Positions 8,790 to 64,000 of a DNA stretch of 64,000 bases are shown piece after piece. The DNA is from Paragordius varius (Eukaryota > Animalia > Nematomorpha), in contig OZ176052.1 in the NCBI GenBank assembly GCA_964247055.1, positions 6,758,001-6,822,000 on the forward strand, read 5' to 3'. The position numbers were made by a program, and so were the translations under genes. The notes below the pieces were generated by a model. It saw only the letters and a list, made by a program, of their open reading frames with translations. It was not told the DNA's origin and made no database searches. Position 1 is the stretch's first letter, and each line of letters starts with the position of its first letter.

Positions 8790-11700
8790 TTATGAATTTT
8801 CAAGCAAATAAATAATTTTGTGCCATGCATCATTAATCATCACAATAAACATAAACAGTGTACCAAATAAAAAGGTAATGAGAAGTTTACTAAACGGTTT
8901 ATTTAAGCCAGAAAATACGTGATAAATTATCATCCCTGAACAATAGATGAAGGTAATGAGTAAACTGTAGGTGCGCAAAGACATTATGCGCTCCGTGTCA
9001 CCTGAAAGTATGGTCATTTTATTAGATAAACGCTCGCTGGTTGTTGTAGCTTTTATGGATGATATTTTGGTTTGTCCTTCTTGGTTACTTGGTTTTAAAT
9101 GATTTGAATAGGCTTCTTGTCTTTCATTTCGAACTGAGGCATATGAAAACGAATGGATTCGTTGCATCCTTGGTTTACTTTTACAGAAGTATTGCTTGAA
9201 GAGTGTTGGAAAGACGCGGCCAATTTTGAGGTTGTACCACACACAAAGCGATATTATGGCAATGTCGAAGCTTGTTTGGAATGCCAGGTAACTATTGTCA
9301 TTTGCTAGAGGTGAACAAAATTTAAACACGCTTAGCTTGAAAAATGTAATTTGGTTTGTATTATTGGCGTAATGTCGCATATCACCGAGTACTTTGAGCA
9401 TATTTGGTTTAACAGCTAAATGTCTGTTGATGTGCATCTGTTGAAAAGTTTCAAAGTATGCCAGATTTGTGGGATCAAATATGGCAAACATTGTTAAACC
9501 TAATATCTATAATAAAAGAATGAATGGAATTTTTTTATAGAAATATTTGTTTTACAAGCCAGATACAATGACGAATTGGATAAAATTTATTTTTTACCGA
9601 TTACACAAAATCTATATAATGAATAAAAAATGAAAATCAAACCATGTCAATAATCTAAAATAATTATAAATATTCTTGCTAATTCATATTCTTCATTTAT
9701 GTTACACATGGCGTGCTTATGACCGTTACCATGAGATTGGTCAAATTTAAAAGCTGCAATACATGATATTTTTATGGAGTTGGTATGACAGATTTTATTT
9801 AAATGGTTTGAAATCACACCCTAATCACGCTTGTTTATTTAAGATATTAACACATGAAGGAAAAAATATAAATCGAAATACAGATATGAAGATACAGGAC
9901 CGTTACTATGACCGTTTATTCTTATATATATATAACGAAATTAAAGTTATTATGATGGTATAGTAGGTAGGGCGCCGGTTCACACTGCTGAGTTCAAACC
10001 CCGATACTACTCAATTTTTCCATCATCGGTGTTAGCCCTGGGCAGGCGAGTGTTAAAGCCTTCACAAGTCCGGATACAATTTAAGTCAAAAAGGAAAAAA
10101 GAGACTCTAAACTGTATATTTATTTATTTAAGATTTGTTTATCACACACACTCGACTCACCTGATGTGAATTAATGTAAAATAAAAGCAAGATTAAAAAA
10201 TTTTAAAAATAGAACTGTTTTGTTAAGTTTTATTTGATTGTCATTAATAATATTACATTATAAAAAGCAATATCATTGGCTAATTTCTTTTTTTATTTAA
10301 TGACATATATTTTCGATTGTTGTATTAACTGGTATTATGTATGATTGCATTCATCTGCAAAGAGGTTGGCTATTACAATTACCATAAAAACCCTAACCTA
10401 AACGAAAATTTGCTAAATGAATATTTTTAACAATCAAAGGTATTTGATAAACTAAATATGAACTATTTATAGAAAAAAATATATGTTGTTATATCTCATT
10501 TTTTTATTTATAAGCTAAATAAAACTTTGGAAAATATAGTAAACTTATGTACAATCAAGCACTAAACCATTTTGAATTCTAATTAATTTATGTAACAGCT
10601 GATATTTTATTAAAAAATCGCTATTTTAGTCCTATACTTATTAATATTTAGCTCTATTCATATAATACCTTATTCAATATTATATATGACCTATTCAGCA
10701 TTCATATAAAAGCATGTATAAATATAAATGTATATATTTACTTGAAAAAGAATAATGGCCCATACAATCCAAATTAAATTCCTAACATGATATCTTCTTC
10801 TGATAATAAATTTTTGATAAATGATATGTAGTTGACAAAACATGACAGAAAATATAACTGTACCACTAATTTGCCAAAGGTACTGACCAATATTGCATAT
10901 TGTCAAATTTTTATTGCTAAGCAAAAAGAATATGCTAACAAATCCCGCTAGTAATGCCAGGTATTTTAAATGATATAATATCCTTATTTCAAGTTTGAAA
11001 ATCAAGTTTTTATAATTTTTCATGTATATAACAGCCAAAATAATCCATATAAAAATTCCAAAAGCATTGACAAAATATAAGACGGCTGGCCAAAATTCCA
11101 TTTGATTAATATTAAAGATGGGTATTGGTGTGCACTGTTTATTATGAGATACAATTTTTCTATCATTACGGTAAAATCGTATTATATTAGTGGTTTCTTG
11201 GAGTTGCTGTAACAGATCAGGGTTTATAAGTACGATGATTAAATGTGATCTAGATTTCTGATACAGCGTAACTATGTGATGTTTTCCCGGTATGGGCCAT
11301 GTAAAAATGGGACACATTCGACACGGTTCTGTTACGCTATTGGCATTGTAATAGGCTCTTAATGGACATGTGTGACAAACCCAGCAACATCTATCCGAAG
11401 TTGGGAGAGAGTATTCGTATGTTTTGCATAATGGACTACATCTTGCCTTAGGGGCTGTCATCTCGTCACTAAAACTTATATTGTTTATGATTATGTCTTG
11501 TGTTATAACCAGTTCTTCAGTTACATTATTAAAATGGCCAACCTCCAGCATTTGATAGATGTTGGATGATATTTTGCGAAAATTACCTACTTTGATACGA
11601 CTTAAGTCTCGCGAATATCCACTAAGTTTTTGGCCCACATAGGAGTGATGAATTTGTAAATAGGTTTGATTAATAAAAGATAACATATTTTGGTTTCGGA

Positions 11701-14700
11701 TGCATTGCAATAAAAAACGTTTGAGTGACCTATTGTTTTCAAAAGACTTATTTCCGTGAACACTGTTTAATCTTTGTTCAATATGGGGCAAACATTTGGA
11801 TGCTACCATATTCTCAAACGATTTTATTATTGAAGTTGCTGCGGTAACGGTAAGTGAGACTTGTTGATGATTAAAATTATTTTGGTGGGGATTGCTTTCA
11901 ACAATTAGTCTCTGTGCAATATTCTTTTGATTTAACGCATAAGACAACCATTCATGTCTTGTCTTATTTTTATGGTCAATAAGCCATCTAACATAGTCCT
12001 TTAAATCTTGATAATTTTCCAGTATGGCTATTGTTTGACAAGCTAAATGCTCCACGCCAGCATCCCTAATTTCCAAACTGTCTGGCCAGGAATCCACAGC
12101 CACAAAAATTATTTTGGGGTTTGTGTCGATCGAGTTTATAATTTTCAAGATTTCGATGTAATGAGATCGCCTAACATACATGAGGACAACCAAATATTTT
12201 TGATGGGATTCATCAATTAACGTTTCTAACTGCCTTTTAATATCGTAAAATGTGCTGTTAAAATTTAATATTGCTACAATGGGAATTTCGATATGTTGTT
12301 TTAAACAAGCAATATTTTTCAGTTCCTTTTTGGTTTGGTAATAAAAATAATTGTAATAATCATCATCGCTATAGATTATAGCGTATCGGTTCCATTTAAA
12401 GTATTCAAATACTTTGGATACGGCCATTATAAAGCTACTTTGGGATGACATGGGAGTAAAGAAGTATGTGAACCTGTTGATATTAGGTATAAATAGATTA
12501 TAAAATTAATACTTTGAAATTATTGGGATTTTTTGGTTTAAGGATCACTAGCAAAATATACTTTCCTGTTTAAAAATCGGTATAAAATTAATTTTATGCA
12601 GTGTTGAAACTATTATAGAAGCCACTTTAAATATAAAAAGTCAGTTTATAACCATTAAAAAATTACCCCATATTACAGTTAATTATAGATATATAATTTA
12701 AATTTTTTAAAAACTTTTTCTCCAAAAGATCTATATTTTTTTTGATTCTTTTAAAAACTTTTTTCTCAAAAAATAGTAATATATACAATTTATGCATAAA
12801 CAAGTCATCGTTGTTGGCAGTTGGACTAATATGAGGAATTTTAGCGAATGTTACGATAGGAGACACAGCTTTAACTACTGGGCTATTCAGAGGTCCTACA
12901 AGGCTTGTTATCAAGGTTCCATTATTGACTTCATTTATTAATCTTAAGGCTTGTAACTTGAATTATATGGTATATATAATTATTTATATAATAATCTGCA
13001 ACTAATTTCCAATTAATAATTAACTATAAACAATACTTTTGGTAAGATATATATAATTTGACATCTAAAAGCTAAAAAAATAAATGAAAAGAGTAATCAA
13101 TCGGAAATATTTTATTTTTCTGCCCCCTTGATTTTTTCAGTCCAAATAAAACCCCGAATATCCTTTTATTTAAATACGATTAATATTGAACTATATGGAA
13201 GATACAAAATTAAGAATGATCCAAATTAAAATATTTTTTTCTGTTCCAACTTGCCACTGATTTTACCATAAATTCTATTCATACTAATTGAATGCATCAC
13301 AAAGATTAAAAGCAGAAAGCACAAATTGATTATTAATATAATTATATTAGTCATGGCCGTGAATAACTGCATTCATAAGGGGAGAGAGCGGTTATTTGTG
13401 ACAAGTCAAAGCCCAACCTAATGTAATAACTATTAGTATATAAAAAAATGAAACGTTTGCAAGCAATTAACATGTATGCGTTTTTCTAAATCAGGGGTCT
13501 CCAACACAAATGGCTTAAAGAGCCACATTTTCGACCCCAAAAATCCGAAGAACCACAGTTGAATTAATATATATCAAGACATAGTATCAAATAATTATTA
13601 TATAACATATAGAGATGTGTTAATTGTCATATAAATAACAAAATAACTAGTACAAATATTTTAATATTGCTAAATTTGCTGTTAAATTGTACTAATATGT
13701 GTATCCGATGAAAAGCATGGGCACATTAAACTTAATTTTTTAAATATATCTGCCAAAGCACAAATATATATTATATCACAATGAATTCTATTCGAGAAAT
13801 TGATGAATTTTTTCACAGAAGACAACTTAAACTTACTCCACTTAAATTCCTGCTGAACTGTGTTTAGCATGCAATATTAAATATTTAAAGAATTAGAAAT
13901 ATATGTATGAGCTACCGAGGATCCTTTTATAAGAAAAGAAAATAGAGATTCTATTATCAGTTTTTCATTTCCGTAGTCATATTAATAAAATCCAGATGCA
14001 CGGTATTAGTCTATCTTTTTGTAATTCGTGAAACGCACTCAATGTTAGTTTACAAATAAGGCACATGGGTTTATGATTAGAATTTTGTGTAAAATTATAT
14101 TATTCCCACGGATTATATTTTCTTTTAACTTTTATAGATTTATGCATGTAATTTATATCTGACTTTAAATAAATAATAATTTACTGCACTAATGTATCAA
14201 TATAAATTAAGTTCCGCAAAAAATAATATCTCAAAAATGACTATAAAAAAGTTTATTGTAAATATTCGAATACGTAATTTAGAAATCCAATAATATCGGT
14301 ATTGCTATATTAAAAATGAGACTGTGATTTTCAATATGCTCTTTCACTATTTAAATAAAAACATTTACCAATTGCAAATATTTTCGAATACGTAATTTAC
14401 ACCATTAATATGGGTATTGCTATATTAAATGTGGAACTGTGGTAGAAATAAGGCTCTTTCACTAAATATTTACCAAAAAAATTTACCAATGCCATGTATT
14501 CTATAAATTTTCAGATAAAGGAAATAAATGATTAAATGAAGGTGATGAAAAATAATAATAAATATTATAAAAATATTTTAAAAATTTTACATCTCCACTC
14601 AAAAATAAAACTTTGAAAAATTTTTTTTTTCAAAATATTTAGCCACTCAAAATTTTTAAAGAGCTACAAGTGGCACTGGAACCACCGGTTACCCCTGTTC

Positions 14701-15125
14701 TAAATTATATTAATATGTTTAATAAATACCTGAGCGATAGCTCTATTATCACAGGTCGGTAGTATGTAGTATCCCACCGTTATATTAAGCATATCCAGCA
14801 ATAATTTTACCGGTGATCTATATGCCTGCGATGAATGCATATATGATGATGTTAGGTTTGGGTGTATGATTAGTCTATTATGATTGTATGCATCAATAAC
14901 GTACACCATGGCATACACAATCAAAATTTGGTATTCATCCAGTTGTTGACTGCAGTAATCAGATGGTTCGTTTCTAGCTTGATAGGTTTTGAGCAAACCA
15001 CCTATGTTTACATCCCCCAAACGTATTAGCTGTGTTCTAGGGAAATTTTCTAAAGCTTTTCTCATGCCTAACGTCCTTGTACACCAACTCATGGTCCAAA
15101 GAAGGGCAAACAAATGTAATTTCAT
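8790..15125 (-). CDS. Class C GPCR (mGluR/CaSR-like: signal peptide, Venus flytrap, Cys-rich domain, 7TM), ~1004 aa; exons 15125-14730, 12956-12787, 12473-10742, 9506-8790
   Basis: GDVNIGGLL, NITVGYYILPTC, VGPLNS..IPHISPT, FKWNRYAIIYSDD and CRD CSPLC..CCWVCHTC..C..CP..WP, followed by hydrophobic TM helices. All three introns are GT-AG with matching phases (0, 2, 0); total 3015 nt. Confidence 0.9.
9950..10180 (+). mobile_element. Probable tRNA-derived SINE in GPCR intron 3
   Basis: A-box-like TAGTAGGTAGGGCG and B-box-like GAGTTCAAACCC at tRNA-like spacing in a locally GC-richer island; no full cloverleaf. Confidence 0.4.
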
Positions 15126-15942
15126 GGTTAGAATATGAAAATTAATACCTATTTTATCCAATGACTATTCATTTTTTTCATCTAAAAGGAATATTTTTAT
15201 CCTATTTTTATCAGAGTTTATATCAAATTAATTAAAAACCAATTAATATACAATAAAGACGTACAATTATACGCCTCGTTCAACGCATAAAATAGAAGTA
15301 ATTAATATATTGTTATATAACCAATGGTAAAACAGATTTATGGAATGGTTAATTAAATGAGATGATTTAGAAATATAAACTTTGACGTAATTCCATATTC
15401 GTACATATAATTTCACTATAAAAAATCATAATTGTAAAAGTCTGATTTTTGTGAATCTAAGATAACACGTTTTTAAGATGCGTATAAGCGCTTTTTCCAC
15501 AGCCTTTAGATACCTCGTTAGATTTGAATCTATTTGCAATGTGTATCGGAATTTATTATTTTATCCAATATATTTATATTTAAAAATAGGAATTTTGCTA
15601 TTATATCTAAAAAATTAATAATAAAGGTGACAACATACTTTTCTATTAAATGCTTTTATAGTTTATTAGGCCTGACCGCATCTATCTGTGACTGAGGTGA
15701 ATATCTTTTGACCGACTCCTTTAGGCAATGCTTAACCATGCCTCATTGTTATATATCTTTGTACCGTAACAATTAATCTTTAAATAGTCTAATATTTTCT
15801 AGAAAAATTGTTTCCAAGAGTAAATTACACTTTTAAATGTTTCAAAAATGATATTGTAAGAATTTCGTAAACAAAATCAAAAATTTTAATACATTTAAAA
15901 AAATATATTCAATTTAACTTGGATACAGCACACTCATTTTAG

Positions 15943-16496: not shown

Positions 16497-18230
16497 TTAA
16501 TAGAGACATACGATATTTATATCCATTTTTATATAGAATGATAATAAAGTTTGATTAAATTTGCGCCATGAATAATGAACCTTACCATTAAGTGATTATA
16601 AAAGGAGGGGTAAGTATTCACATTTTTCGCATTGCTATTTATAGATACGTTTTCGGGATTGAAAATTATTATCGCTTGACATAAAATAGAGCTGCCCAGC
16701 GGATATAAAAATGAATTGTTTTACACTGACAAAAATAAAATTAAGAACTGTGTGCTTAATTTGTCCAATATCGAAGAATCTGTCAATGTTTTGTTATTTG
16801 CCCATTTCTCCTAGGTTGCTAAATCCAGATTATTAAAAGCTTTCCGCTACAATCTGCATATTTGTTTCAGATATAATTGATTCTATCAAAAGCGCACTAT
16901 ATTGCATTGAGACTCTTAAGCCGTGTTTTTTGTAACACAGTAAACACTATAAATATCTTGAACTATATATATTTAATGGAATTCAGAATTTTTTTGGCTA
17001 TTAGTTTATTGCTTCTTAATGAAAAAGTAGCGAAATACGGCACATTAATATGACTTTTTGGTGAAATTAAGTGCTTCAATCAAATATATTAAATATCATC
17101 CAAATTTAATAATAAACAATAGATAGATAAAATATTATATTTTCGATGTATAATCCGAATCTTAAATTATGTAACCCCTCAAGCTAGTTGTTTTCAAAAA
17201 TGTAATATGGTCAAGTTTGCGCGATAACAATTTATAATATAAGCTAGATTATTACATATATATATATTAAATAATATTTTTGAATATTTAAATTTCAACA
17301 AAATTTTGGAGAAGCCTATTTTTAATGGAAACACTAAACCATTTGAGATATAAAAACACTATTTTCGGGCAGTGTATTTATGATTTTTGAATGTTTTTCT
17401 AACCTTTTAAACGTGGTCCGAACATTAAACACCGTTCATTAAATTTTGATAAAAGTTTTATAATAAATTAGCCCTTTTCAAAAATATTCTTTTTGATTTA
17501 TTCATATTATAATTTTTTAAATTTAATAAAACTAGCCCGTTTTAGGTCCGAAAATCTGAGACTTTCGGTGCTTATATTTAAAAACTTAAATATTTAGAAA
17601 ATATTGTTTTACTTTTTGGCTAGAGTGTATGATTTATTTAAATAATATTATTGGGAATGGAGCATTTGGTTAAAAAAATTTTATTCAGCTTATGTGCGAA
17701 ATTTTTGGGATTTTTGATATGGTTCGTTAACACAAAAGCGGTAATAATCTTCATAAATCTAAGACTCAAAATAAGAGCCAAATTAATGTATTTATCTAGG
17801 AATATATAATCAGGATATTTTTATACGCAATTGTGTGCATTAAGTGAATTAATCTCCCTTGGGATAGTATCTCAAAGCGATTTTATATTATAATAAAAAG
17901 CATATTATATTAGGCTAAATTTGAATTCTAATGCCTTTTAGGTGTGTTATTATTAAGAAATACTTATTTAATAAAGCATGAAATATATAAATCATAGCTT
18001 TGTAGCCAAATATTAATATATTGATATTTTGTTATTTCTCTAGAGAATTGCTAAAAATATGATATCATATACTATCGTAAAATATATTTTGTATTGAATA
18101 TATATAATAATATATACATTAAATGTATATGATTTAATATTTATAAAAATTTATATATCTCAAAATATTCATTTTATTATTTAAACATCAGTGCCACAAT
18201 CACATATACAAATTTCAAATTTCAATTTTG

Positions 18231-21200
18231 ATGAGCCTATTCTCAAAATATTTTTTCGTTTCTCAAGATGATAATTTGTAATATTTAATTAACATTAGGA
18301 AACAACGTATGAAAATTACTTTGATTCGACTAAACGAATTTGTAAAAAGTTATAATATTTTAGGAATATAAAATTAATTTTAATCAAGATGAGGCCCCAT
18401 ACGAGTATTTTACATTCAAATTAGACAATACTTCATTTAACAAGTTTGTAAAGTAATAATTTAGATTAAAAATTGAACAAGGCTTAATGTTTTTGTTTGA
18501 TGAATTTCCAACTAAGTTTATTAACTTATTAAATATGGTAGATGATCAAAACAAGTATTATTTTTTCAAAAAACAGGTCGTATCTATCCCTTTCCAAAAA
18601 GAATCAATCTTATATTTTTGCTATCAATGAAATAACATCATTTCGACAAATATGTCAACTTTCTTTGGAATTAATGATACCACCAATATCAGAGATTAAA
18701 TTATATTATGCCGAGTATATAAAAAATTTACAGGTTTGACAATAATTTAAAGATGGATTAAATTTAGATTGTATTGGTTTATTTGCCTATTTTTATACTT
18801 ATATAATGTTTTACAATATATATTTTTTATTGAATTAACGTTATAACAAACATTATTTGGCAGTTACAAACAATTTTCAAACCGTTAATTTATAAAAGAA
18901 TATGCTTATTATTTGCTAAAATTTATAAACTAATTCCAAATGTATATAGCAAAACCCCCAATATATGAAAAAAATATTTTCCTAATTCAATATTTTTGTT
19001 ATAAACATATTTAACATTTGCTCATTTATCTAAGTAAAGTATTTTGCCATATGATTAGTTATTTATTCCAATTTTTATGCATTCTGTGAATGTATATGGC
19101 CTATTATTTTATTTTATAAAATTTAATTATAAACGGTGCGTATAAATTTTAAGATTGAAAAAAGCCTATATGGATTTGAAAAAGGAGCGATTGATTATAC
19201 ATAGAGAATGATTCAAAACAATATCATTGATATTTAGGAAATAATTTTTGATTGGAAAATGCGTATATAATATATAAGACAACAGCGTTTTTGATGAATC
19301 TACATGAATATTCATAGCACTATTAATAGCATCAAGTGGTAAAATTTGGATTTTATTTGTCTTATGAAAGAGGATTTAACTAATGAATATAAATTGGTCA
19401 ATTTTATGGGATTAAAAATGTATCCATTTTAATGGATATTGTGCCAGATGGGTCTGTAATAATTTTTATATCTGACTCAAAACCGAGCCTTAAACCTGGC
19501 TCAGTACTATATATGATGACCTTACTGAGGCCAAACTAAATACAGAAGATGTGGAAAATAGAAGCAATTGGAAACAGTAACTTATCTTGATTCAGCTATC
19601 TTCAATTTTGAAGATCAACAGCTTTGATGGATATATCTTATTTAGAATGTTGCTTTTTAATTAATATATAATATAGTCATAATAACTATTAAATTAAATT
19701 CCCGTTTTATTAATTAAAGGAATTTTGAAATATACTCAAAATATTAATGATATAAAGTAAAATTTTCAGTTATATTTTAAATCTAGAATCTTCAGTTTTA
19801 TTTTCATAAAATTTTCAGGCACATTTTTGCGTCTTTATCCAACCATATTCCTGTCAAACGCTTTTTCATTATTAATTGCATGTAACTTCTTTTTTATTTT
19901 GATATGCTTTTCAATGAAGTTATTTTAGACAGTACTAGAAAAACGGATAAGAAAAATGGTTAGCATAGAGCAGTGATACTCAAACCGCGGCTTATGGGCT
20001 GCCACGGATCTAAAATTGATTTTCTATTGTCCTGAATTATTTATTTTATTTCTTATATGGCGTATAAATAGCTGCGAATTCAAACAACCAAAAAATTTTA
20101 TCAGTTTATGGCTCTCTAAAGAATATTTTCCGGGAAAGTCCACGATTGAATCGATTGCATTTAGAAGGTTAAGTGAAAAGCATATCGAAAGGGAAAAGGA
20201 GTTGCAGTGTATTTCAATCCATATTTTTAAATAGTTTGAAAGGATACCACTAAGTACAGATTAAGCCGAAAAAAATGTGCCTGAAACTTACCAAAAAATC
20301 CTGAAAAGCATGTACGACTCTGCCATACCAAAGTTAAACTTCAGGGACTGTCAGATACTTATTTACTAAACCAAGGCGTCTATCATGGGTCAATCAGTCC
20401 GTTGCTATAAAAAATATGCATGGACCAAATTTCAAAAGAGGTAGGACGATATGGTGCCTGTATTTGCTTTATGCAGGTGACCTAATTGTGCTGTCAGTCG
20501 AGTTCCAATAAAAGAATTGGCGGATTGTTGTGTTACAACGGGTCGGTTTAAGTTATAAAAGAAAACGGAACTTATAAATTTTGGTGGGAAAAAACGAGAA
20601 ATGGTATTAGAAGAAGGTTGGATAAAGGTCAGGAGGAAGGGAATATTTAGGAGCGATTTTAGCAGCAGATGGTTGAACACATTACAAAAAAGTTATGCTA
20701 AAAATATTGATTTTAAAGATAACGGTGAGATTCACTACTGTTGTATAACCAACAAAAAGAAAAGCACTTTTAGTTACTGAGATGGAGATAGTTAGATTAA
20801 GGTGCGAAAAAAAGACATAGTGAAAATAAGTACTTAAAAACACTCCTAGATGGTTTAAACACAAAGAAATGTATTTTTTGTGGAAACAAGGGAAGAGGGT
20901 GCTCTAAAACGCGGTGGATAGATACGGTTAAAAGGGATATGGCAAAGTTAAACTTAAAACGCAAAGACGCCATAAATAGGGCTCTATGGCGAAATAGTTT
21001 ACGAATTTGACCGCTCGAAAGAGTGATATCACATAATGTAATTATTATTATCGTTTAATTTATTACACGGAATTTTATGTTTTATACGACATATTTTATC
21101 GTTTTAGGAAGAAATCTCATGCATAACCCAATCCAAGAATATCAAAGAAAATGAGTTGTCTTCAAAAATCGAATTGCAAAAAAATTTAGTAATAATTTTT

Positions 21201-22825
21201 TACTTAATTAAGCTTCACACAAAAGATAAACGCATCTCAGATTTGAATGAACAGATAAAAAATATTCAAAATGAATTGACATGTAAGGCCAAACAAGAAA
21301 TTGATTTATTGAATCAAAAAATGATTGAGGTTAATATACGCCGACATATATTTTAGGTGCAAAAAAATTTTGATACATCTACACAAAATCAAATTGATTT
21401 GGCTGAAAAGAAGTTTATCAAAGAATCCGAAAATTACAAAAGAAAATCGGAAAACCTCGTTAATGACAATAAGGCTAGTTTACATAACCACGATAAACAA
21501 CCCTATAATTTTTTTCATTATGATATAGAATTTAAATCTTTATTAAAGTATATTTCAATATGTGTTTTTATAAGTCATTTTAGGCTGTTTCTATGTTGTT
21601 TTTTAACTATAAGTTTTGATGGTACACCATCGTAAACTATCCAGCTTTTTGCTAAATAGTTCTTTATCATACAATCTGTTTTTAGTTTGATTGGAATGTT
21701 CATAATTATTATTTTAGAATTTAACAAATCGGTTAAATCAGGCATTGTTAGATAAACAAAACAATACAGAACAGTATAAAAAGCAAATTGATGATTTACA
21801 ACAAGATAATTACGAATGTAAAATGTTGCTTAAACAGTTACAAGAACGGTACGAAGCCTTCAAATCTGAAAAGGTTTAAATTCAATGTATAAAATATTTC
21901 ATAGATTTTGGTAATATATAAAACTTGTTTGATCATACATTTTTTATTTTCCAATTATATATGAATTCAATTCACTTATTAGGAATCTTATGTGGTAAAA
22001 TTGGGAAAGAAAGAAGAGGAGAGACAAAATTTGAAGGAATCAATTAAAACCTTAATGGAAGATTTGGGTAAAGGTCATGAAATTATCCGTAAGTTGCAGA
22101 CTGAAAATCGGATATTGGTTGAAAAAGTAAATATGTACTAATAAAATTTTAAAATATTTCCTGATATTTTTATTTTCTTGTAAATGCATAATAATTGTTG
22201 TTATTTTCTTGTAAATGCATAATAATCGTGGTTATACACCAGAATAGAATATATTTTTCCCCACATCTATTGCATTTAATAAAAAAAATAATTGTATTGG
22301 CCTTTACGACTGTTTTTGAATCGTTTTTAATTTTTATATATTCACACCTATATTTAATATTGTAAATTCGTTAATATATAATAAAATTTTAGATCATTAT
22401 AGATTAGAAACAATATATCTTTTAGATATCAACTCAGAATACCATTATGTTGAAGCAAGAAGAAACTGTGGAAAGTCACCGAAAACTTGTTATGGAACTT
22501 GATAAACGTTTCCAAGATTCCAAACATGAGTTTGACAAATTAAACTCAATGTATCAAACAACAATGTCAGAAAATGTCCAATTGCGCGAACAAAACGCTA
22601 ATTTTCAGGAAAAACTTGCGCTAAATGAAACTGGTTTTACCTTGATTTATTTTAAACCAATTATTTTTTTAAATAAATTTATTAATCATAATTTTTAACA
22701 AAATTATAGTCATAAATTGGTTAAATAAGCAAATCGCCGAGCTTAAATTGGGTGGAAACGTAAGTGATAATGGCAAAAAACAAATTACGCACAACAATAA
22801 AAAAGAAACGAAACCTAAAGTATAA
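18231..22825 (+). CDS. SASS6: Spindle assembly abnormal protein 6 (centriole cartwheel protein), ~451 aa if it stops at 22825; exons 18231-18277, 18299-18341, 18364-18443, 18465-18554, 18577-18733, 21108-21188, 21213-21329, 21357-21473, 21718-21873, 21983-22126, 22426-22633, 22710-22825
   Basis: Spliced product has the SAS-6 head (SFNKLKIEQGLMFLFDEFPTKFINLL; FAINEITSFRQICQLSLELMIPPISEIKLYY) and coiled-coil motifs (IKTLMEDLGKGHEIIRKLQ; KISTQNTIMLKQE; LNETVINWLNKQI). These match recalled human motifs [55 protein letters not shown] and NEKLITWLNKEL. All phases are consistent. Confidence 0.9.
18278..18298 (+). other. 21-nt GT-AG intron (SAS-6 intron 1)
   Basis: GTAATATTTAATTAACATTAG; contains an in-frame TAA; removal joins MSLFSKYFFVSQDDN-L-KQRMKITL. 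Confidence 0.75.
18342..18363 (+). other. 22-nt GT-AG intron (SAS-6 intron 2)
   Basis: GTAAAAAGTTATAATATTTTAG; removal is required to reach the frame of the next exon (EYKINFNQDEAPYEYF). Confidence 0.8.
18444..18464 (+). other. 21-nt GT-AG intron (SAS-6 intron 3)
   Basis: GTTTGTAAAGTAATAATTTAG; two in-frame TAA; removal restores the ungapped motif SFNK-LKIEQGL. Confidence 0.9.
18555..18576 (+). other. 22-nt GT-AG intron (SAS-6 intron 4)
   Basis: GTATTATTTTTTCAAAAAACAG; SAS-6-like sequence lies in different frames on either side, and removal reconciles them. Confidence 0.9.
20005..21010 (+). mobile_element. Degenerate RTE-clade LINE (reverse transcriptase and C-terminal region) in SAS-6 intron 5
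   Basis: Fragmentary frames PGKSTIESIA..EKHIEREKEL, GVYHGSISPLL, LLYAGDL and GRGCSKTRWIDTVKRDM...DAINRALWR, with many stops and frameshifts. Confidence 0.8.
21189..21212 (+). other. 24-nt in-frame GT-AG intron candidate (SAS-6 intron 6)
   Basis: GTAATAATTTTTTACTTAATTAAG; has no stop, and if retained inserts hydrophobic VIIFYLIK into the coiled coil. Confidence 0.6.
21330..21356 (+). other. 27-nt GT-AG intron (SAS-6 intron 7)
   Basis: GTTAATATACGCCGACATATATTTTAG; its terminal TAG is an in-frame stop between two coiled-coil ORFs (21156-21356 and 21357-21635). Confidence 0.85.
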
Positions 22826-29100: not shown

Positions 29101-32100
29101 TTACATCCGATTGATTTAAATGACTTACTACCATTTAAAAGATGCAGTTTTTTGCGCTCTTTCGAATGATATAAAATACATGGCTTCATATCTAAAACTT
29201 TAAATTTTCGAAATTTCGAGTTTAATGTTAAATCGGGGCCAAAAAATTATCGATAAACTCTAATATAAAAAAATTCTTTCATGCTAGACCAATTTTCTTT
29301 TCACATATACTAATTATGTCCTTTAATGAAATAAATTTTAAATTTACAAGAATGGCAGTTAAAAAAAGTTAAAATTTGTTGTCTAGTGTTATGATTATAG
29401 TTAGTCCACATGATTCGTTTACTGGTGGAAACACGAACCCACAATAAGAATTTTTCGATATACAAATACTATTTGTGCCAAAAATTCGAGGCAAAAAACT
29501 TAACTCTCATAACAAAACAGCAAAAGCAGTTTTTTAGAAACGTCTAAAAGATAATAAATTTAATGTTAAATATATTAATATAATTCAGATCTTGAATATC
29601 GAATTTAGTTTACTTCATATTAATTATTAAAGACGACATCGCATAAAAATATCTGCATTTAATTTTTTACAAAGAGAGAGGCAAAACCAACTCACTAAGG
29701 AGGTAAGACTCATATTGTAAAATCATATCAAAATTCTTTTGTCCTTATTGATTTTTAAACAATATAGTAATAGGCACGTTAAAATATTATTGTTAATTTT
29801 CTAGCCTTTTTCTTCCTCTGCCGCTACAGGTAAAACAAAAATCTTTGTTTCGCCCAAAAGTACCGCTAGTTAATGTATTCCCCAAAATCCCTACTCCCTT
29901 CTTAAGGCTTTTGGCCAATTTGGGGGAAGGTGTGCTTGTGATAGAACCACCTAAACTCACAGATCCTGACAAATGCCCCGTCCCAGCACACGAGATGCAT
30001 GTAACGGTTCCGCGCCCCGAACATCTCCAGCATCGTTTCCAACCATCCGCTCCACATATATTACATTTCTTTGGTAAATGATAAAATTTATATATTTTGC
30101 GTATATGTATTGGCTAAGTCACTATTGGTTTCATATAAAGACAATGAGATATTATTAACAGCTAAAAATTTTTGGTCCATTTTAATAACGATAATGAATT
30201 GAATATATATATACTCCCAGTCAAAAAAACGTTTTCCCAGTCAATCGATACAATTTCCTTGTCAATAAAAACATTTTTCCAATCCAAAGGTCTTATTTTT
30301 GATAGATATATAATCTTTTAATCATTATCAGAAAATCACAATTATCGAATGAGAATTCCAATTATATACCAATACACTCACAATCATTCATGACTTATTC
30401 TTTTGAAGTTATATTTTATTAGGTTTAGTCGTTTATGGTTTTTGAGTATTTTTGTAAAAAATATTTTTAAGAAAATTTTTCATGATCCTTTTTATTATAA
30501 CAATTGAGATCGATGGTTCACATTAATATTCGGGGTTAACCTAAAAACATCTATAGTTTCAGATGAATTTACAAAATTAAAAAATTACCATTTTTATCTC
30601 AAATTGCTCATTTAACGTTTCAAATTGGTTTTAAAACATTTCAAGTTTGCGTTTGAGAACCAATTATAGCCGTTAATTTATTTGTAGCTAATTTCATTTT
30701 TAAATAAAAGTCTTCCCATTTCATCTCAAAATTAATGCCCTTAATAACCCTCATATTATAACTAAACGATCTTCCGAAATTCAAAAAAATACATTTTTGA
30801 CCCAAAATTCGAACTATTAATATAAATTATTATTATATATAAAACCAGTTAAATATATCGCCATGGAATAACGATATCGTATGTAACGCATAGCTTACTA
30901 CTTATGATAAGCATATATGATATATAGTTTTGCATTAAATATACCCATCCCATGATATATATTATCTAACTTATATACTTATGTATAATTTACGCAAAAT
31001 TTATTGTTTATGTGGTTTTTTTGTGCGCCATTCGATAATTTTTTATCCAATAATATTGCTCTCTACTGAAATTTATAACTAAACAATTCTATTAAAAGTT
31101 AAATATACTCCATATGAAGCTGTAAATGGTATTTCCATATGCGATTCTGCATCCCTGAACAATATTTTCGGTGAGCAGGGAATATCCCAAGGTTCGGGGG
31201 GCATCAAATCCTGTAATTCAACCTTTAATGATTTACTCCTGATACAAAAAAATATTATTTTTTAAAAGGTTATGTATTAGGATTGAATATATATCGCATA
31301 ATAATATTACTGTGCGGCGAAAATGGGCAAAAAATAAAGGTTAATGAATCATATATCAATCAATAGCCAAGGTTCCAGGTACGCGGTTAAAATATTAGAA
31401 AAAAAGTTATTTTAATTTCTGTTTTTAGCCAAAATCAAATAATCGCATTTTTTCCCATATTAAGTCAAATAAAATTAAATACAATAGATGAAAAAGTGTC
31501 AACTAAATTTTATTTGTTTTAATATAGCATTACAATAATTCTAAACGCAAAATAAAACTAACATGGATTTTACATTTTTTCGGAGGGTCCCAGAAAGATT
31601 TTCAAGAATATTAGCTAAAATTCGCACTTTGTCGTCAAATTGAATCATAAAAACTTATTAATATCCGGTTTTCTAATTTTTATTAGAAAAATCATATCTC
31701 TCTCATAGAGATTACCCAATATATCGTCTTCAAAAAAATTTGAGCCTTATATAAAAAAAGAAAATTTTTCGATAATTTGTTCTAGGCGTATAATTTTTAT
31801 AACATCCAATATAAATATTATAAATACTTTTTCCATACAATTATGAAAAAAGTATCTATCATCTCAGATTTTTGATTTAGGGAGTTTTTTCACCCGAAAT
31901 TGATTATATATTTTTGGCACCATTTTGATACCGGATTTAGGGCATTTCATCTAAACGGAAAAGTTATTTAGAAATATGTTGGATGTTTTGTAAAAATTAT
32001 ATGGAGCTTCCGCTTTGATACTAATTATTGAAAAATATTCTTTATTATTAAGGCTTAAATTTTTTTTGAAGGCTATATATTGGGTAATTTTTTTAAAGTT

Positions 32101-44067: not shown

Positions 44068-45948
44068 ATGTATAATATGGTTTTGATATTGTTTGGTTTT
44101 TGGAACCATGTTTTACTTTACCAATATATATTGTGCGTAATGCTGGTTGACATTCATTTTGGATTTGAGGACATTAATGATACAACAGCAATTCCAGCAA
44201 ACATTCTAATTGCAGATGAAGCTTTTGCATGTCAAACACATTACAATCCTTTTCACAAAACTTCCCACATTCAACTTGTGGATATAGGTATAATTTGGGA
44301 TTATAAAATATACCTACCTACCTTATTACAATAAAAATTAAAAAATATAAAAAGTAAAAGACATCAATACTTTATAAAAAGACAATTAAATTTTTACATC
44401 ATATGTTTTTCTATAAAACGGATTTTTTTAAATAAAGATTAGCATATTCAGCTTTATATTCCATATTTGTATGTGATCAATTATTTAAGTTGTTATGAAG
44501 ATATCTAAGATAAAGAAATGTACTTTCTTTATAAATTTGTCTTTATACTTTAAATACTTACGCTTTGTCTTTATACTTTACGTAATTTACAAATTTTAAT
44601 TAATAATTGCGCTAATTAATAGATTTTGTCTTAAAAGAACCTTGGGAATCATGGAAAGTTCCGCATTTTCGTCTGAACCCTAGCAATATTTACACATTTA
44701 ATTACAAACCATTGTTACGGTATAATACCACAAATTACAGCTTTTATATTGAAATAGAGGATGGTATTACACAAAGGACCATAATCAATAAACAGGTTTA
44801 AAGACTAATCAGATATAAATGCTCAAGTAAATTGGAACGTCTGTAGAATATTTAATGCGTTTTTTGCTTCTATTATTATTTTTCAAATTTGGAGAAGAGC
44901 TCCTATATATTAAAATATATATTTATGCCAGGGTCATATATAAAATGGTATCGATTACACATTTATTTTAGAAATATTATAAAGAATGGGCATTCGCTTA
45001 AAATCTAACTTTTTTATTTATTGTATTCATAATCATTTGTATGATATTTACAAAAAATACCACTTAAACTTAATATTTTGCTAATTTTATTTGGAGGATA
45101 TTGATATATAAAAAATATTAAATAATTTTATTTTTATTTAAGAGCATGGATAGATATGTATTAAATCAAAATGATTTAAGCATACATTTAAATCTTTTGC
45201 CAATGGGAATGACAAATGTTACAAATTTAACGACATGGATATATGGGCAAGGTCGAATCGATGGTAGAAAGAAAATATATAAAAGTTATCCTTTACAATT
45301 TTTATTCTTATTTTTTGGCTAAGGTGTGCTGCAGTAAAATAATTTTTAAAATGTTGAGAAACCCTGATTTAACAGTCATAAAAAATAAAATAAATTTGAG
45401 AAAAAATAATCCTATATTATATATTTATATATAGGTGAAGTTATTTTTTTATTGCGATACGGGTTTACAAATGAGCCACAAATGAGCCAATCTTTTCGTG
45501 CCACAAATAAATCTGTCCAAAACTCTCTAACCTTTGAAGATCTTTTAAATATCGAAAATATAAAATGGAATACGTCAACCATAAAGCTAACTAAATTAAA
45601 TATATCAATTTATGAAGAAGCCCTTTTAAATTCCACCCTCTTTATAGCAAGAGCTAAGCCAACCCATTTTGATCCAAATATTATAATCCAATATAGGCTG
45701 ATCAACCACACTGAAAATCTTTTCCATATTGACAAATATACTGGTATAAATCATTTTGTTTTAAAAATTTTTAAAAGAGCCGTTTAGTGGGGATTTTTAG
45801 TGAATTTTTTTCACACCAAAATTGCTTTTTCTCATTTTTAGGCCCAATAATAGCTGATAAAATAACTGGATTTAAAAATGGGACTTTTTCTAAGTCAGAC
45901 TGAATATGATAGGATATATTTTGCAAGTATACCACATGGTTAAATATA

Positions 45949-45980
<32 letters not shown>

Positions 45981-48900
45981 ACTAAGGTGGAAATTATTGT
46001 TTTTTAAAAATATATGTAATGAAATTAATATTTTTAAAATACTCCTCATTTTGTTTTGTAAAATTTTATTACTCAACTATCCAATTATTAATATTAAATT
46101 AATCTAAAATTGAAGGTGAAATCCGTATTATAAATCGAATCAATCTGGAATCAAATATTTTAAGTAGCATTCCACTTCACATCGAGGCAAAGGCGTATGG
46201 CGATATCGAACAAAATGTGTTACCGGCACATCTTCTTTTAATTCTGGAAATTATTGATATAAATGACAACCCTCCCACCCTTATTCCAAAAGTAATAAGC
46301 TTTATCCATGAAATAAATCCTTACCCATGTTTTTAAAACAACTATCAAATTTTGATTGTAGAATATTAAAAAAAATCATGTGAACCTATTTATTTAAACT
46401 ATATTATTATTATGGTTGGATTTTAATGGAAACTTTGACTAACGGTATAAACAAAAAAATAAATTATAAATATTTTCCATTTGCATGCTATAAATTTACA
46501 TTTTATCAAAATTTTAGAATTTTTCATGTGTTTTTTTTACATATTAGAAAAATATCACTAAAAAAATTAAAAATGTCGCAAGTTTTTAAATTTAAGATGC
46601 ATCCATAAGTGTCTACATAAATGATTAAAAGGATAAAGTTTTTATTGTATATTTTTTGTAAAATCAGGAGTACACGCTTAAAATCGACGAAAATCAGACG
46701 CTGCCTTATGAAATTCATACTTTTGGGACTAAAGATAATGATTTAACCCAACCATTTCTCCATCGCTTTGCTGTACAACAATTAATGGCATATGATCCAA
46801 AGGGGAATAAAATATATTCAAAAAATGAAAAGGAAGCTCTGGAAAATGGTCCCTTTGAATTTGTGTCTAATTCTAGATCAAGGTAAAAATGTATCTATAC
46901 CATTTGAAAATATGTAATTTATTTAGATAATTTTGATATATTTTTTCATTACGAATTTTATATGTTTTAACATTAGAAATGAAACGAATAACATTTTAGA
47001 GGTCAGAAGAGATGCGTTGTTAGACAGGGAAGTTATTAGCCAATATACAATATCCGCTGTGATTACGGATGAAACTATTTCTCAGGCATTTGCGTCAAGG
47101 GTATCAACCGTTGCGAATCCATATTACCAAATTTATATTTTAGTAAGCAATCTTGAATTTAATTAATCATTTTTTGAAAATTAGGGAATTATGTAGCCAT
47201 GTTTTCATAGCCGTCATTAAATATCTTTCTCATATAAAACGTGTACTCTTTACCAAAAGTATATGCATTCTCTTTTCAAGGTAATTTAGGTGATTTCCTT
47301 TTAGCTTAAATCATTTTATTTTTGGTTATTTTTACGATATTAGATTGATATCTGTGCAGTAACCTAATTCTTATTTATACAACTATTGAAGAGATATTTT
47401 TATTTGTGTATAATAATTACACATTTCTTGATCTTTTCCATACCGAGAACCGATCCATTATAATCTGATTTTTAAAGGGTAATATGGTATTTGATAACCC
47501 ATTTATTACTATTTGTTTTACCTAAACCGAAATAATGATAATATTGTCCGTATAAAAAACAAAATACATAGGCTAATCAATGCGTTTTAATTTCTAATCA
47601 TACATAATAACGAGGCATTTTAAACCTCAGAGTACTGCAAAATAAAAAGGTTGCGCTGATGCATGGTAAATTTAATTTATAGAGAATTAAATGAAAATGT
47701 TTGTCCATTTTACAAAAGATGATTATATTTACGGTGTACCTCTTGAAGAGTGAAATTAAAATATTTTATTAAGGTTTAATGGTTAGAGTTTTCACGCATA
47801 CTTAACCATATCTATGTTTTGTCTAGGTGAATCAATCACCGGCTATATTTTTATTTTCTCCCTGAATTCATTTCGCTGCACACTAATTTTTCACCCAATG
47901 GTTTTTCATTTTAAAAATTCCATACATATAAATGTACAAGAAATTTCCCTTTTTAAAACAGTAAACTTCTAATATTTAAAAACGACGCTAAACAGCCCAA
48001 ATAGTTTGTCAATAAAAATGATATAAAAATGTGTGTTAAAATCTTTTTTTATTTTATTTTTGTATTTATATATTTAACCTCTCATATATAAAATATTTTA
48101 ATCTTGTATAAAACGTATAAATACCAGGAATTATATTACAACACCATAATTTATTTAGATCCACATAAAAGTTGTTGATGTAAATGATAATCCACCCATA
48201 TGTCAATCTAGCAATAATCCCATAATAATTGATAGTAACACAGAAATTGGGTCTATGATCGGAATTGTCGAAGCTTATGATTACGATGATATGGAAACAA
48301 ATAACGGGAAAATTGTTTACAAATCATTGAATTACACAAAAGGTAATCATTTATTTCATTTTACAATATATATTTATTTAATCCAATATTATAAAAGTCT
48401 CTCTCTCCTTCAAATAAGTGCCGATATATTGTCCTAATTATGATTTTTGTAAATGGATATAAAAAATTATAATAAAATTTAAAGTTTAAACAATCTATAA
48501 ACGATAGATGGGCATTTAAATGTATTTAAACCCTTTTTATATGTTTATAAAACATTGTTAAATGTTTCTTAAGTTTTTTTATTGGTTTTAGTCGAAATTT
48601 TTAAACTTTAGTAGCCTCATTTGTTTTAATCCACAACTTCATTATACATATAGGATTGGTGCCTTCATAGACTATAATAAATAAATTTTCTCGTAATTTA
48701 ATAAAGCAACACCATTGTACGCATCAATAAAATATAGGTATTGTAAAATATTTTTTGCAATTCGAAATAGATATAAACATCCACCCCGATAGCGGAATAA
48801 TCGTATATAAGGGAATAAAAGATAAACACAACAATTTACAAACTGAAAATCGGATCGTAAAAAGATATTATCAAACTTGTAACATAGAACCCGGTTTAGA

Positions 48901-51900
48901 TGGCAAACCTTCTTGTTGTCAAAGCTATTATCAAATTAAATACGTTGACACAAACATTCACACCCCATCAAAAGATGTGATAACCAATCGCCAAAAAGTC
49001 ATTGTCATTTTGAAACCCAAAAATGTTTATGAAACGGTTAAAATATTAGAGGTATTATTTTTCAAATTGTTTAATAAACAGTTTATAATAAAACCATAAA
49101 CAGTTTTCAGTACCGTTAAACAAATTTTTTGAAAAAACTCTGTTGCAATTTTTTTTTGAAGTTAGTATAAAAAAATTTTACACAATGTTTTATTTTTAAT
49201 TTTAATCTTCAGTTTATTGAAATCACAAATAAATATTTTTTAGTATTTGTGGAAAAAAGTAACACACAATAAATATTTATAAGCTTATGATTTTGCGGTT
49301 AATCATATTCTATCAAAAATTTCGGATACGTGTGAATTAAAAAATAACCAAAATCACCATTTACCAGTGGTTTTTTGTATATTTTTTATTGAAACCGGAG
49401 TAAAAAAACGATTTCGGTGGCACTAGTATATTAAAATATTATCTCAACGCTTGTATTTTTTCTCTTTTTGATAGAACACTACATTAGGTTCAAAAGTGTA
49501 TGAGGTTGTAGCTACCATACAGGCAGGTTACAGAGAAAGCTGGAGAACATTCAATTCACCAACAGATAAATTTTCTTCGAAGGATGAATTTGACCGATCA
49601 AATTTTTTCCCTGAAGAATCCAAAAATTCAATGTTTAGATATGACTTTTATTACAAGTTGGATGAGTTATCAATAGCACCGGGTGATCACAAAGCATTTT
49701 TTATTCATCCTAAAACAGGATTCATATATACCAAAACTTCTTTCGATGCTGAATTCAAAGAAAAATACACAGTTACTTTTTTAAATAACGATTTAATTGA
49801 AATAAGTTGAGACAAGATTTTTAAAGATCATTTTATGATTGAATCTATAATGCCGCCTCTAACTATCAAAATATATTATAATAATTTATAATTTCAAATT
49901 AATGTTTATTGCATTAAATGGACAGATATTTTATTTTCCTACTTTTTTTACTTTATATTTACAGTTTATCGTTAAAGTTGTGAGCAATGACTTAGGGTTA
50001 GAAGAATCAAAATTACTTACAATCCAAATTCAGGACATCAATGATAACATTCCAATATTTCCAGGGGTATGATAGATGATTGTTTTTTTTAAAAATATAT
50101 ACTATTTTCTCGTAATTTAATATAAATTATTTTATAAATATAAACGCTAAAAAATTCATAATACCGCCTAATAAATAAATAGGCAAACATTTTCGGTCCG
50201 ATTAACGAATTTAGGGCTAAATTAAATTTATTTTTTATCATTATCAAACTTCACTATATTTTTATAGAGTGACAGAGAAATAGTGGTGAATGTGTTGGAC
50301 ACAAGTCCGCCTGGGTTCATTATAGGAACATTAAATGCAACAGATAGCGATATTTCTGCCATAAACTCAAAGATTTATTACCACCTTATATGTAATTATT
50401 TATGGACTTTTTAAGCAACATATCAACAAAATTTTGTCATAATAACAATTATTTAGCATAATTTTTCCAAAAATATTTAAATACCTCGAATTTGACAAAT
50501 TTTATCGTATTTTTTTATATATTTCCTTATGATAAATGACTTATGATTTGGTTATTTTATTTCAAGCTAAAATAAAAAATTGCTTTAAGGAAAGTTTTTT
50601 TAAAAAGGTGAATATTTAATTAAATATCCCAGCGTATTTTTAACATTATTAATAAAATCAAAATGCTAGATAGAGGTGCTTTCATGTTACCGAACACAAA
50701 AAATCAGTAGAGCACAAACCAGAATACATTAAGTGAAAACTTATTTAAGAAACCGGCCATTTAATAATTATTGTGGTTATCGAAAAGAGCTTATTATAAT
50801 CATATCCTAATCCTCTCTACACTATATGAACAAACTTTTATAAATAGGCAGTGGAAATAGAATAAAATTTAGGAGCCAAGCTTTTATACATTTTTAAAAA
50901 AGTATCCAACCAACTTTATTAAATTCCTATTAATTTTTACCCAATTCAAAAAAGCTATAAAATACCATTGAATTTACCCTTTATTCCATATTATAGCAAA
51001 AGCAAATACGTATACCCTTTTATATTTCTGTATATTACATATATTTTCCGCAATTTTTCTATTTTTGCTATTAAGATATTTCACATCCAAATGCCATAAA
51101 GATTGATGAGCTGAATGGAAATGTTTGGGTCAATGCGAATTTGGAAAATTTTTTTTCACCTTTCGACATGCATGAACAAAAGGTGGTAACCCTGATGGTC
51201 AAAGTAACAAACGATGGAAACAAACCTCAAATATCATCGAGAGATATTTCAAAATTATTAAAATCAAATAACTTAAACGATCCAACATTAATTAGAATGA
51301 CTTTATTTATCCTACCCGATCCAAACAAAGTTCAATCCGATCCACAATTATGGAATCATTTAGCCCTTAATACGACGATTGGTAATCTATATTTATAAAA
51401 GAATTGAAAAACTTCCTACAAATATTTCAATACAGTATGAGTAAATATAAATACTGAATATTGTCATAAGATATGCAGTAAAGAGTAAATTATTAATAAC
51501 TAATAGCACGGGAAAAGCGAAAAAAATAACTATAGGCCAATTATAGAACCCTTTGTTTAATATACTATCTGGCAATAATTAATAAGAATAGCAATGTATA
51601 CTTACTCATACTGTAATTTAGATTTGCAGTTAGACAATGAAGATATGGACAGGGATTTTAATATCAACCTTAAAAACCAAAGATATATTATGAAAGATGT
51701 AATTTACTGCCAGCTTTCAAATGTAAACGATTATGAGTTGAATATAAATAATAACGCGTCATTTATCATGGGCTACGAATGTAGTGCAAAAGAAGAAATA
51801 AATTCTAACCACCTTAATAGAAATAAAAAGATAGCGGAAACTATGTTGCAGAAGGAATGGGGGCTCATCGATGGAAAAATTGGTGAATTTTCTCATTCCA

Positions 51901-62849: not shown

Positions 62850-63529
62850 TTATACTCATTACAAAAGGTAAAATAATTTTAAAACGGTTCCTAAACATAG
62901 GGTGTTGCCTTCAATCCGTGATTTTTTGCTTTAATTTTTAAAACATTTAGGCATTTAAATAAAGCAATAGTGACTAATGCACCCAACTCGGGCACAATAC
63001 GTACATATGCATTGGGTCAAACCCCAAAACTGCCATTTTACTATCATCAAGATAAAAATTATAATATTATGTACTGATTGGATATTTAAGGGCAATGTTT
63101 GAAGTGAATAAGCATCACTCAGTAAGCGTAATATATAAAATTTATAGCAGGTCGCCAAACGTAAACTAGTTTATATGGAAATATACCATGTAAATGAAAA
63201 GGTAAAACTTAAATACCATTTAATAATATATTTATCTTTTGATTTAGAATCATCCATATTTAATTCGGATTTTTTGTGTGCCCTATCACCCAAAACTACG
63301 CTCACCCATCAAACGACTGATTTTATTACAAAAAAAGATATCCCTAAAGTTATTTCCGTTCAAAATAATAATGTAGATAAACATTTCATTTATTGTTGAC
63401 GTAAGCAAGCAAACACTCGCTACTAGAAATATAAACATTAGGATACCATTAAATGTAAGTGAATGTAAAAGGCTTGATCCCTTGTTAAAATGGTTACAGA
63501 CGCAACATATTAGTTTCAACGCCACACCC
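62850..63529 (+). CDS. Unidentified multi-exon gene fragment with micro-exons and 20-33-nt introns; exons 62850-62867, 62901-62917, 62951-63070, 63091-63121, 63148-63160, 63248-63348, 63377-(63400 or 63529)
   Basis: Six consecutive GT-AG junctions (33, 33, 20, 26, 87 and 28 nt) give one open frame: LYSLQKGVAFNPHLNKAIVTNAPNSGTIRTYALGQTPKLPFYYHQDKNYNIMAMFEVNKHHSQVAKQSSIFNSDFLCALSPK..DIPKINISFIVD. No homolog recognised. Confidence 0.5.
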
Positions 63530-64000
63530 GTAAGTGTTTTATTTGAATATGCCAATTATGCTTTTTAGTTATAAATTCAGGCGACTAAAATATATTGATT
63601 ACCAGAACATTAGTATTTTATGGCCTAAAATGCCACCTTTATAGAATTAAGAAACCGGTTAGACATTGTTTCTACCAATCTCAAATTAGATTTTATTACT
63701 ATTTAAAAAGCATTCATAAACTCGATTTTGGGCATCCTTTTTATTCGCAATTATTGAAACTGCCGTGGTAAACACTTTCCTTAAAATTACACATATTCAT
63801 TAATAAGCCTATTCAATATTACTATTAATTATATCAGATTTCGCCCGTAAAATTTTACACAAATATTACGAAAAATATTTTCCTATGATGATTATTTTTA
63901 TATATAAGCGCCCTACATTTGACTAAAAAAGTTTATGATTTTCTTCTAATTTTGTAAATATATTGACAAAGTTTATATTATGCAACTAATCAAATGTCAA

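Follow-up and report, generated by a model that had tools for sequence, protein, structure and literature searches.

Introns shorter than 30 nucleotides (nt) were long thought to be absent from animals. In the unicellular ciliates (15-16 nt in Stentor) and microsporidia, the U2-type spliceosome removes introns far below 30 nt (cited in PMC13644364). In animals, such introns have recently been shown in two groups of parasites with compact genomes and were read as genome reduction: in a study of 51 metazoan genomes, myxobolid myxozoans (median 22-27 nt) and Dicyema japonicum were the only animals with introns of less than 30 nt, and further lineages with such introns were predicted (Hadjez et al. 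2026, PMC13644364). The main text of that study does not mention Nematomorpha (PMC13644364), and in the literature we found no published report of introns below 30 nt in hairworms. Here we analyse a gene for the centriolar protein SAS-6 (SASS6) at 18231-22825 on the + strand of the window, by which we mean the whole stretch of 64,000 nt of DNA that was studied. The initial annotation of this DNA, which had already noticed very short introns in the gene, called them exceptional for an animal and cited dicyemids; their rarity and the Dicyema case stand, and the myxobolid myxozoans have now been published as well (PMC13644364).

We read this gene, with a probability of about 80%, as a functional SAS-6 orthologue whose transcript would carry six real micro-introns of 21-27 nt beside ordinary, repeat-filled introns. 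The gene model has 12 exons and encodes 446 amino acids (aa). Its frame starts at the first ATG (18231), is open for all 446 codons and ends with the stop at 22823-22825. The introns measure, in order, 21, 22, 21, 22, 2374, 24, 27, 259, 109, 299 and 76 nt, all 11 have GT..AG ends, and four of the six micro-introns (mini-introns 1 to 4, 6 and 7 by their place among all introns) fall in the first 260 nt of coding sequence. The nucleotide sequence supports a predicted transcript that would combine 21-27-nt segments needing removal with introns of 76-2374 nt. The elements of the model are the following.

18231-18277, + strand: exon 1, 47 nt; begins with the first ATG of the open frame; residues 1-30 have no Pfam match
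18278-18298, + strand: mini-intron 1, 21 nt, GTAAT..ATTAG, phase 2; gives an immediate TAA if kept in
18299-18341, + strand: exon 2, 43 nt
18342-18363, + strand: mini-intron 2, 22 nt, GTAAA..TTTAG, phase 0; shifts the frame if kept in; placed by frame continuity only
18364-18443, + strand: exon 3, 80 nt, SAS-6 head domain
18444-18464, + strand: mini-intron 3, 21 nt, GTTTG..TTTAG, phase 2; gives an in-frame TAA if kept in
18465-18554, + strand: exon 4, 90 nt, with the conserved SAS-6 block LKxxQGL..FPxKFIxLL
18555-18576, + strand: mini-intron 4, 22 nt, GTATT..AACAG, phase 2; shifts the frame if kept in
18577-18733, + strand: exon 5, 157 nt, last part of the head domain; has a Phe aligned to zebrafish F131
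18734-21107, + strand: intron 5, 2374 nt, GTTTGA..TTTTAG, phase 0; contains repeats and a LINE-like ORF2 tail
21108-21188, + strand: exon 6, 81 nt, where the putative coiled coil begins
21189-21212, + strand: mini-intron 6, 24 nt, GTAAT..TTAAG, phase 0; in frame and stop-free; absent from the initial annotation
21213-21329, + strand: exon 7, 117 nt
21330-21356, + strand: mini-intron 7, 27 nt, GTTAA..TTTAG, phase 0; its own terminal TAG is an in-frame stop if kept in
21357-21458, + strand: exon 8, 102 nt; ends at 21473 under the GC-AG alternative for intron 8
21459-21717, + strand: intron 8, 259 nt, GT..AG; alternatively 21474-21717, 244 nt, GC..AG; high-copy repeat near 21668
21718-21873, + strand: exon 9, 156 nt
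21874-21982, + strand: intron 9, 109 nt
21983-22126, + strand: exon 10, 144 nt
22127-22425, + strand: intron 10, 299 nt; 77-78-nt presence/absence difference at 22286-22365
22426-22633, + strand: exon 11, 208 nt
22634-22709, + strand: intron 11, 76 nt, phase 1; the sole in-frame GT..AG pair that leaves both open blocks whole
22710-22825, + strand: exon 12; carries the stop at 22823-22825

Five short segments (21, 22, 21, 22 and 27 nt) had been proposed before, and their coordinates and GT..AG ends are as given then. The effects ascribed to their retention also hold, with an in-frame stop from both 21-nt segments and the 27-nt segment and a frameshift from both 22-nt segments. All five are kept here, and the total rises through a sixth segment of 24 nt at 21189-21212. 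Among the longer introns the lengths of 2374, 109, 299 and 76 nt were right; the 244-nt intron is doubtful, since it has GC..AG ends and the intron may instead be one of 259 nt with GT..AG ends, whose donor, GTTAAT, recurs in the 27-nt intron. Both alternatives are in frame, and sequence alone cannot choose between them.

Homology across the junctions was analysed with the Pfam profile SAS-6_N (PF16531; gathering score 25 bits), using as queries exon joins of 56-86 residues that each tested one or two junctions. Exon 4 alone matched profile positions 71-99 (21.6 bits, E 2.6e-4). When exons 3 and 4 were joined at the predicted splice, a single stretch matched positions 46-98 (36.2 bits, E 7.8e-9), and exons 4 and 5 joined in the same way matched, again as a single stretch, from position 71 to the profile end at 135 (36.3 bits, E 7.5e-9). 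The two joins together span profile positions 46-135 and both lie above the gathering score. Exons 3 and 5, each searched alone, were blank against Pfam and the PDB. Junctions 3 and 4 brought a gain of about 15 bits each, and only in the frame made by removing exactly 21 or 22 nt. Searches of the PDB agreed with the profile: the top three matches of exon 4 were zebrafish and human SAS-6 heads, and exons 4 and 5 joined matched residues 73-157 of zebrafish SAS-6 (E 2.6e-5) and aligned weakly to Chlamydomonas 'Centriole protein' chains, the stretch over junction 4 being ungapped after one loop gap. Over junctions 3 and 4, both kinds of alignment confirm that removal of the segments restores the SAS-6 motifs quoted in the initial annotation.

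In zebrafish and human SAS-6, F131 is the hydrophobic head-to-head contact residue that drives ring assembly. The Phe of exon 5 stands opposite F131 of the zebrafish chain 2y3v, and the 2y3w chain, which we take to be the F131D mutant, has Asp at that place. After a head domain of 139 aa, the model continues with about 276 residues (140-415) that include no Pro and only three Gly and are 54% charged or polar. From this composition the proline-free region appears coiled-coil-like, as expected of SAS-6, although a crude heptad score did not distinguish residues 140-415 from the head region. Compared with known SAS-6 proteins (zebrafish 2y3v, human 6z4a, Chlamydomonas 3q0y), the predicted protein has in common the SAS-6_N head, the LKxxQGL..FPxKFIxLL block, a Phe opposite F131 and a long, proline-free and presumably helical stretch behind the head. 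It is divergent: exon 5 cannot be recognised by itself, and residues 1-30 find no match. With 446 aa it is also shorter than human SAS-6, which has 657 aa. A protein search with exon 5 (52 aa) returned only two repetitive, unrelated proteins, a second homologue search with it was blank, and a protein atlas search gave noise only.

Because AT-rich DNA abounds in stops and in GT and AG dinucleotides, we measured how frequently the excision of GT..AG pieces of 18-30 nt, at most eight of them, frees a stretch of 503 nt from all stops. The real stretch, 18231-18733, was stop-free after four cuts. None of 500 dinucleotide-preserving shuffles of it could be rescued with up to eight cuts, and the same held for all but 2 of 117 other 503-nt pieces of the window. 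The reading frame across 18231-18733 is beyond chance.

The locus was then followed in reads from other individuals. Five runs hold it (X1-X5), of which X1, X3, X4 and X5 were examined; X3 and X4 come from the same sample, S2. Depth over the introns was flat in these four runs, and contigs of X1, X3 and X4 spanning 18126 or 18239 to 18540 or 18720 have the mini-introns in place. It follows that the examined runs are DNA and that the segments, being kept in independent contigs, are not assembly errors. Exon depth equals the depth of single-copy flanks, which suggests that the SAS-6 locus is single copy.

Variants were taken from lists that give the best-supported ones, 40 substitutions out of 153 and 12 indels out of 40. 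None of the 12 listed indels touches an exon: each is in a predicted intron or in the 3′ untranslated region, with exons making up 28% of the stretch (P ~0.02). In an X1 contig, mini-intron 1 contains two 1-nt insertions (18292 and 18295) that change its length from 21 to 23 nt, a difference that is not a multiple of three. X1 contigs also showed 1-nt and 6-nt deletions in intron 9 and a 1-nt insertion in the 24-nt segment, behind 21190, which supports the intron status of that segment because in coding sequence it would disrupt the frame. As for the listed exonic substitutions, 12 of 17 are at codon position 3 (P 0.002) and 10 of 17 are synonymous, compared with 18% expected under uniform mutation (P 2e-4); in exon 9 all three are synonymous. 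In these lists the mini-introns evolve as non-coding DNA between constrained exons, and the results support the conclusion that 18231-22825 is a real SAS-6 gene under purifying selection. The kind of evidence varies from one mini-intron to another: junctions 3 and 4 are spanned by homology, mini-introns 1, 2 and 7 are argued for by the frame (with canonical ends and variation data in addition for 1 and 2), and mini-intron 6 by the indel only.

Other differences were seen among the same contigs. Within 18126-18720 they differ from the window at 15 of 302 and at 37 of 595 letters, about 5-6%, a value that is high for one species and points to diverged populations, cryptic species or highly diverse haplotypes. 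One locus-holding run, of low depth, is filed under another organism label (organism B). Contigs of X3 and X4, from sample S2, join 18708 to 21881 with 13 other letters between, a join that would leave out the last part of exon 5 and everything from intron 5 through exon 9. Other X3 and X4 contigs cover exons 6-8, and the join is either a deletion allele or an assembler mis-join of AT-rich words. A 77-78-nt stretch of intron 10 (22286-22365) is missing from contigs of all four runs examined.

The micro-introns are poorer in GC (18%) than the exons (29%) and the long introns (27%). Their first three bases are GTA or GTT and their last three TAG (in four of them), CAG or AAG. The final base of the upstream exon, counted over all 11 introns, is G in four cases, A in four, T in two and C in one, a weak preference for G at position -1. 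An A is found 7 nt from the 3′ end in all six micro-introns, mostly within TAAT- or TAAC-like motifs, a pattern recognised post hoc in six AT-rich sequences. The initial annotation had pointed to candidate branch motifs close to the AG and to an almost complete lack of a polypyrimidine tract, and all six indeed have, 6-7 nt from the 3′ end, a motif that contains an A. On these grounds we propose that the pre-mRNA carries six U2-type GT-AG micro-introns (21, 22, 21, 22, 24 and 27 nt) set among introns of 76-2374 nt, and that the spliceosome would remove the micro-introns. The A at 7 nt from the 3′ end may act as branch point, which would make the lariat loop about 15 nt long and leave no real polypyrimidine tract. 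If so, one spliceosome would handle lariat loops of this size together with kb-scale introns in the same pre-mRNA, and the gene would offer a natural system for studying how a length of about 21 nt allows recognition of the 5′ splice site, the branch point and the 3′ splice site.

Several points weigh against our reading. None of the locus's sampled words was present in five RNA-labelled runs of the same species label. The variant counts come from subsets of the substitutions and indels, and the shared A of the micro-introns, as said, was picked out after the fact. A single continuous frame over 18231-18733 also puts 7 of 11 changes at position 3, so that the substitutions by themselves do not follow the frame changes beyond intron 2; the proposal that substitutions track the frame shifts exon by exon was withdrawn, as one continuous frame fits 18231-18733 equally well. 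Finally, exons 1 and 2 do not extend the Pfam match, profile positions 1-42 are unmatched, and junctions 1 and 2 have no homology support.

The last of these points leads to the alternative that survives best, in which the 5′ end of the model is wrong. Exons 1 and 2 and mini-introns 1 and 2 would then not be coding exons and coding introns, only introns 3, 4, 6 and 7 would be real, and translation would start elsewhere, for instance at the Met of exon 2 or in an unseen upstream exon. When exons 1-4 were joined, the match to SAS-6_N began at residue 30 (profile position 43; 34.7 bits), so that residues 1-30 add nothing to it and profile positions 1-42 are unaccounted for. Against this, the frame runs on without a stop from the first ATG across both junctions, and both introns have canonical GTAA..TTAG ends. 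Of the six changes listed for exon 2, five fall on the third codon position of the predicted frame without altering the amino acid, and the indel that adds 2 nt lies in intron 1. Moreover, upstream of 18231 no block that looks coding was found on the + strand. We consider a wrong 5′ end unlikely, and keep to the model with all six micro-introns.

A different objection would accept the introns and deny that they are new: the genome might be that of a dicyemid or a myxobolid myxozoan, groups for which such introns are already published. The myxozoan Henneguya salminicola also has a low GC content, 29.1% (PMC13644364). The GC content of the window is 27% throughout, compared with 26.93% in the hairworm Gordionus montsenyensis. 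The micro-introns do share much with those of myxobolids and Dicyema japonicum, namely GT-AG ends at a length of 20-27 nt, a 5′ signal cut to about GTA, almost no polypyrimidine tract, A residues a few nt upstream of the AG as presumed branch point, and occurrence in parasites (PMC13644364). The setting is different. In those groups the genome-wide median intron is 22-27 nt and the myxozoan genomes are compact, with relatively few transposable elements (PMC13644364), whereas here 5 of 11 introns are 76-2374 nt long and repeat-filled, micro-introns share a transcript with transposon-bearing introns, and genes are sparse in a repeat-rich region of what is probably a different lineage (Nematomorpha).

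The repeats are conspicuous in the long introns. In intron 5, word depth rises to 15-200 times the locus baseline in the bins 19388-19548, 19871-20031, 20515-20675 and 20837-21158, and 20801-21007, on the same strand as the gene, is the C-terminal tail of a LINE-type ORF2. High-copy repeats in introns 5 and 8 (19388-21158 and about 21560-21700) reach a word depth of up to 92,000 in X1, against a baseline of 300-800. The larger introns are at least partly transposon remains. With a hAT element and a further LINE elsewhere in the window, the earlier description of the genome as non-compact and rich in repeats is well founded. A dicyemid or myxobolid origin is, in our view, quite unlikely. A ciliate-type genome was considered and rejected: in exons 1-5 Gln is encoded nine times, always by CAA or CAG and never by TAA or TAG, and the genes of the window are of animal type. 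Ciliates and microsporidia are unicellular, whereas the window has a class C G-protein-coupled receptor (GPCR), cadherin repeats, LINE and hAT elements and the standard genetic code.

It seems reasonably probable to us that this is a third, independent animal lineage, probably that of the horsehair worms, with a discrete class of 21-27-nt introns that stand, within single transcripts, between introns filled with transposons and up to several kb long. The micro-introns of the SAS-6 gene would then belong to a genome-wide class, which is probably unpublished for its lineage. If this is correct, introns have been miniaturised without genome compaction, and 21-27-nt introns beside a 2.4-kb repeat-filled intron would argue that extreme shortening is not simply a matter of compaction.

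We also considered whether the locus is a decaying SAS-6 pseudogene in which insertions, stops and frameshifts resemble introns by chance. This idea draws on two observations. Most ciliary genes and STIL have been reported missing in hairworms, and if the animal is one of these, a relaxed constraint on centriole genes is conceivable; in addition, the sampled words of the locus were not found in the RNA-labelled runs. However, all disruptions are bounded by GT..AG and none occurs outside such segments, the frame was restored by chance in none of the 500 shuffles, the listed exonic differences are enriched in synonymous changes and include no indel, and the ring-forming Phe is kept. The hairworm data themselves speak for retention: SASS6 orthologues are listed in Acutogordius (g4516.t1) and Nectonema (g7738.t1) (Pachinger et al. 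2025, Table S1B, PMC12094185), and CEP135 is also listed in both proteomes, with STIL and nearly all ciliary genes absent (PMC12094185). The pattern of variation and the restored frame argue strongly against a pseudogene, as the initial annotation had expected, and we regard this explanation as very unlikely. An assembly or sequencing artefact, such as long-read indels in AT-rich DNA whose homopolymer runs are error-prone, is extremely unlikely, since contigs of four independent runs from at least two samples keep the same segments with lengths within 1-2 nt and GT..AG-ended segments of 21-27 nt are not a type of error. Elimination of the segments at the DNA level was likewise rejected, as the listed contigs of the runs examined contain no joined, intron-less form of the DNA.

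If the window is a hairworm's, the gene described here is the orthologue of g4516.t1 and g7738.t1, with which it has in common the retention of SAS-6 in a phylum without most ciliary genes. A constrained SAS-6 with the ring-forming Phe in such a group suggests that the cartwheel is kept for roles independent of the cilium. The initial annotation had warned that short introns could lead to SAS-6 being falsely called lost. That risk does not apply in hairworms, where SASS6 is listed for two proteomes (PMC12094185); the presence of SAS-6 is itself not new for the same reason, and the worry about loss may hold for other genes. Where the minimum intron length of a gene finder or spliced aligner is set close to such lengths or higher, genes of this kind are broken at their 5′ ends. 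This could inflate the counts of missing genes in the lineage, and if the micro-intron class is real, those gene models and 'gene loss' counts of the phylum that come from finders unable to place such introns would need rechecking.

Other features lie elsewhere in the window. On the - strand at 8793-15164 lies a class C GPCR gene (ANF_receptor, NCD3G and 7tm_3 domains) with large exons, one of them of 586 aa, and introns of about 0.16-1.7 kb, among which no micro-introns were seen. Its sequence is very divergent, with Pfam E-values of only 1e-5 to 1e-9, and a protein search with the 586-aa exon found no relative at E 1e-10. A hAT-type transposon with a C-terminal dimerisation domain (E 1.6e-5) is located at 53321-55165 (+), and a LINE reverse-transcriptase remnant (RVT_1, E 1.7e-4) at 58579-59970 (-); a protein homologue search for relatives of the 190-aa reverse-transcriptase block was blank. 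An Rfam search of the window returned nothing. At 29796-30113 (-) there is a GC-richer (43%) open block with a cysteine repeat of the CxxCxGxG type, like a DnaJ-type zinc finger, which has no Pfam match at E 0.01. Open blocks with weak cadherin-repeat matches (E 0.003-0.009) at 45410-51395 (+) are probably part of a large cadherin gene. Lastly, several GTAAG..AG segments of 26-45 nt occur at 62850-64000 (+).

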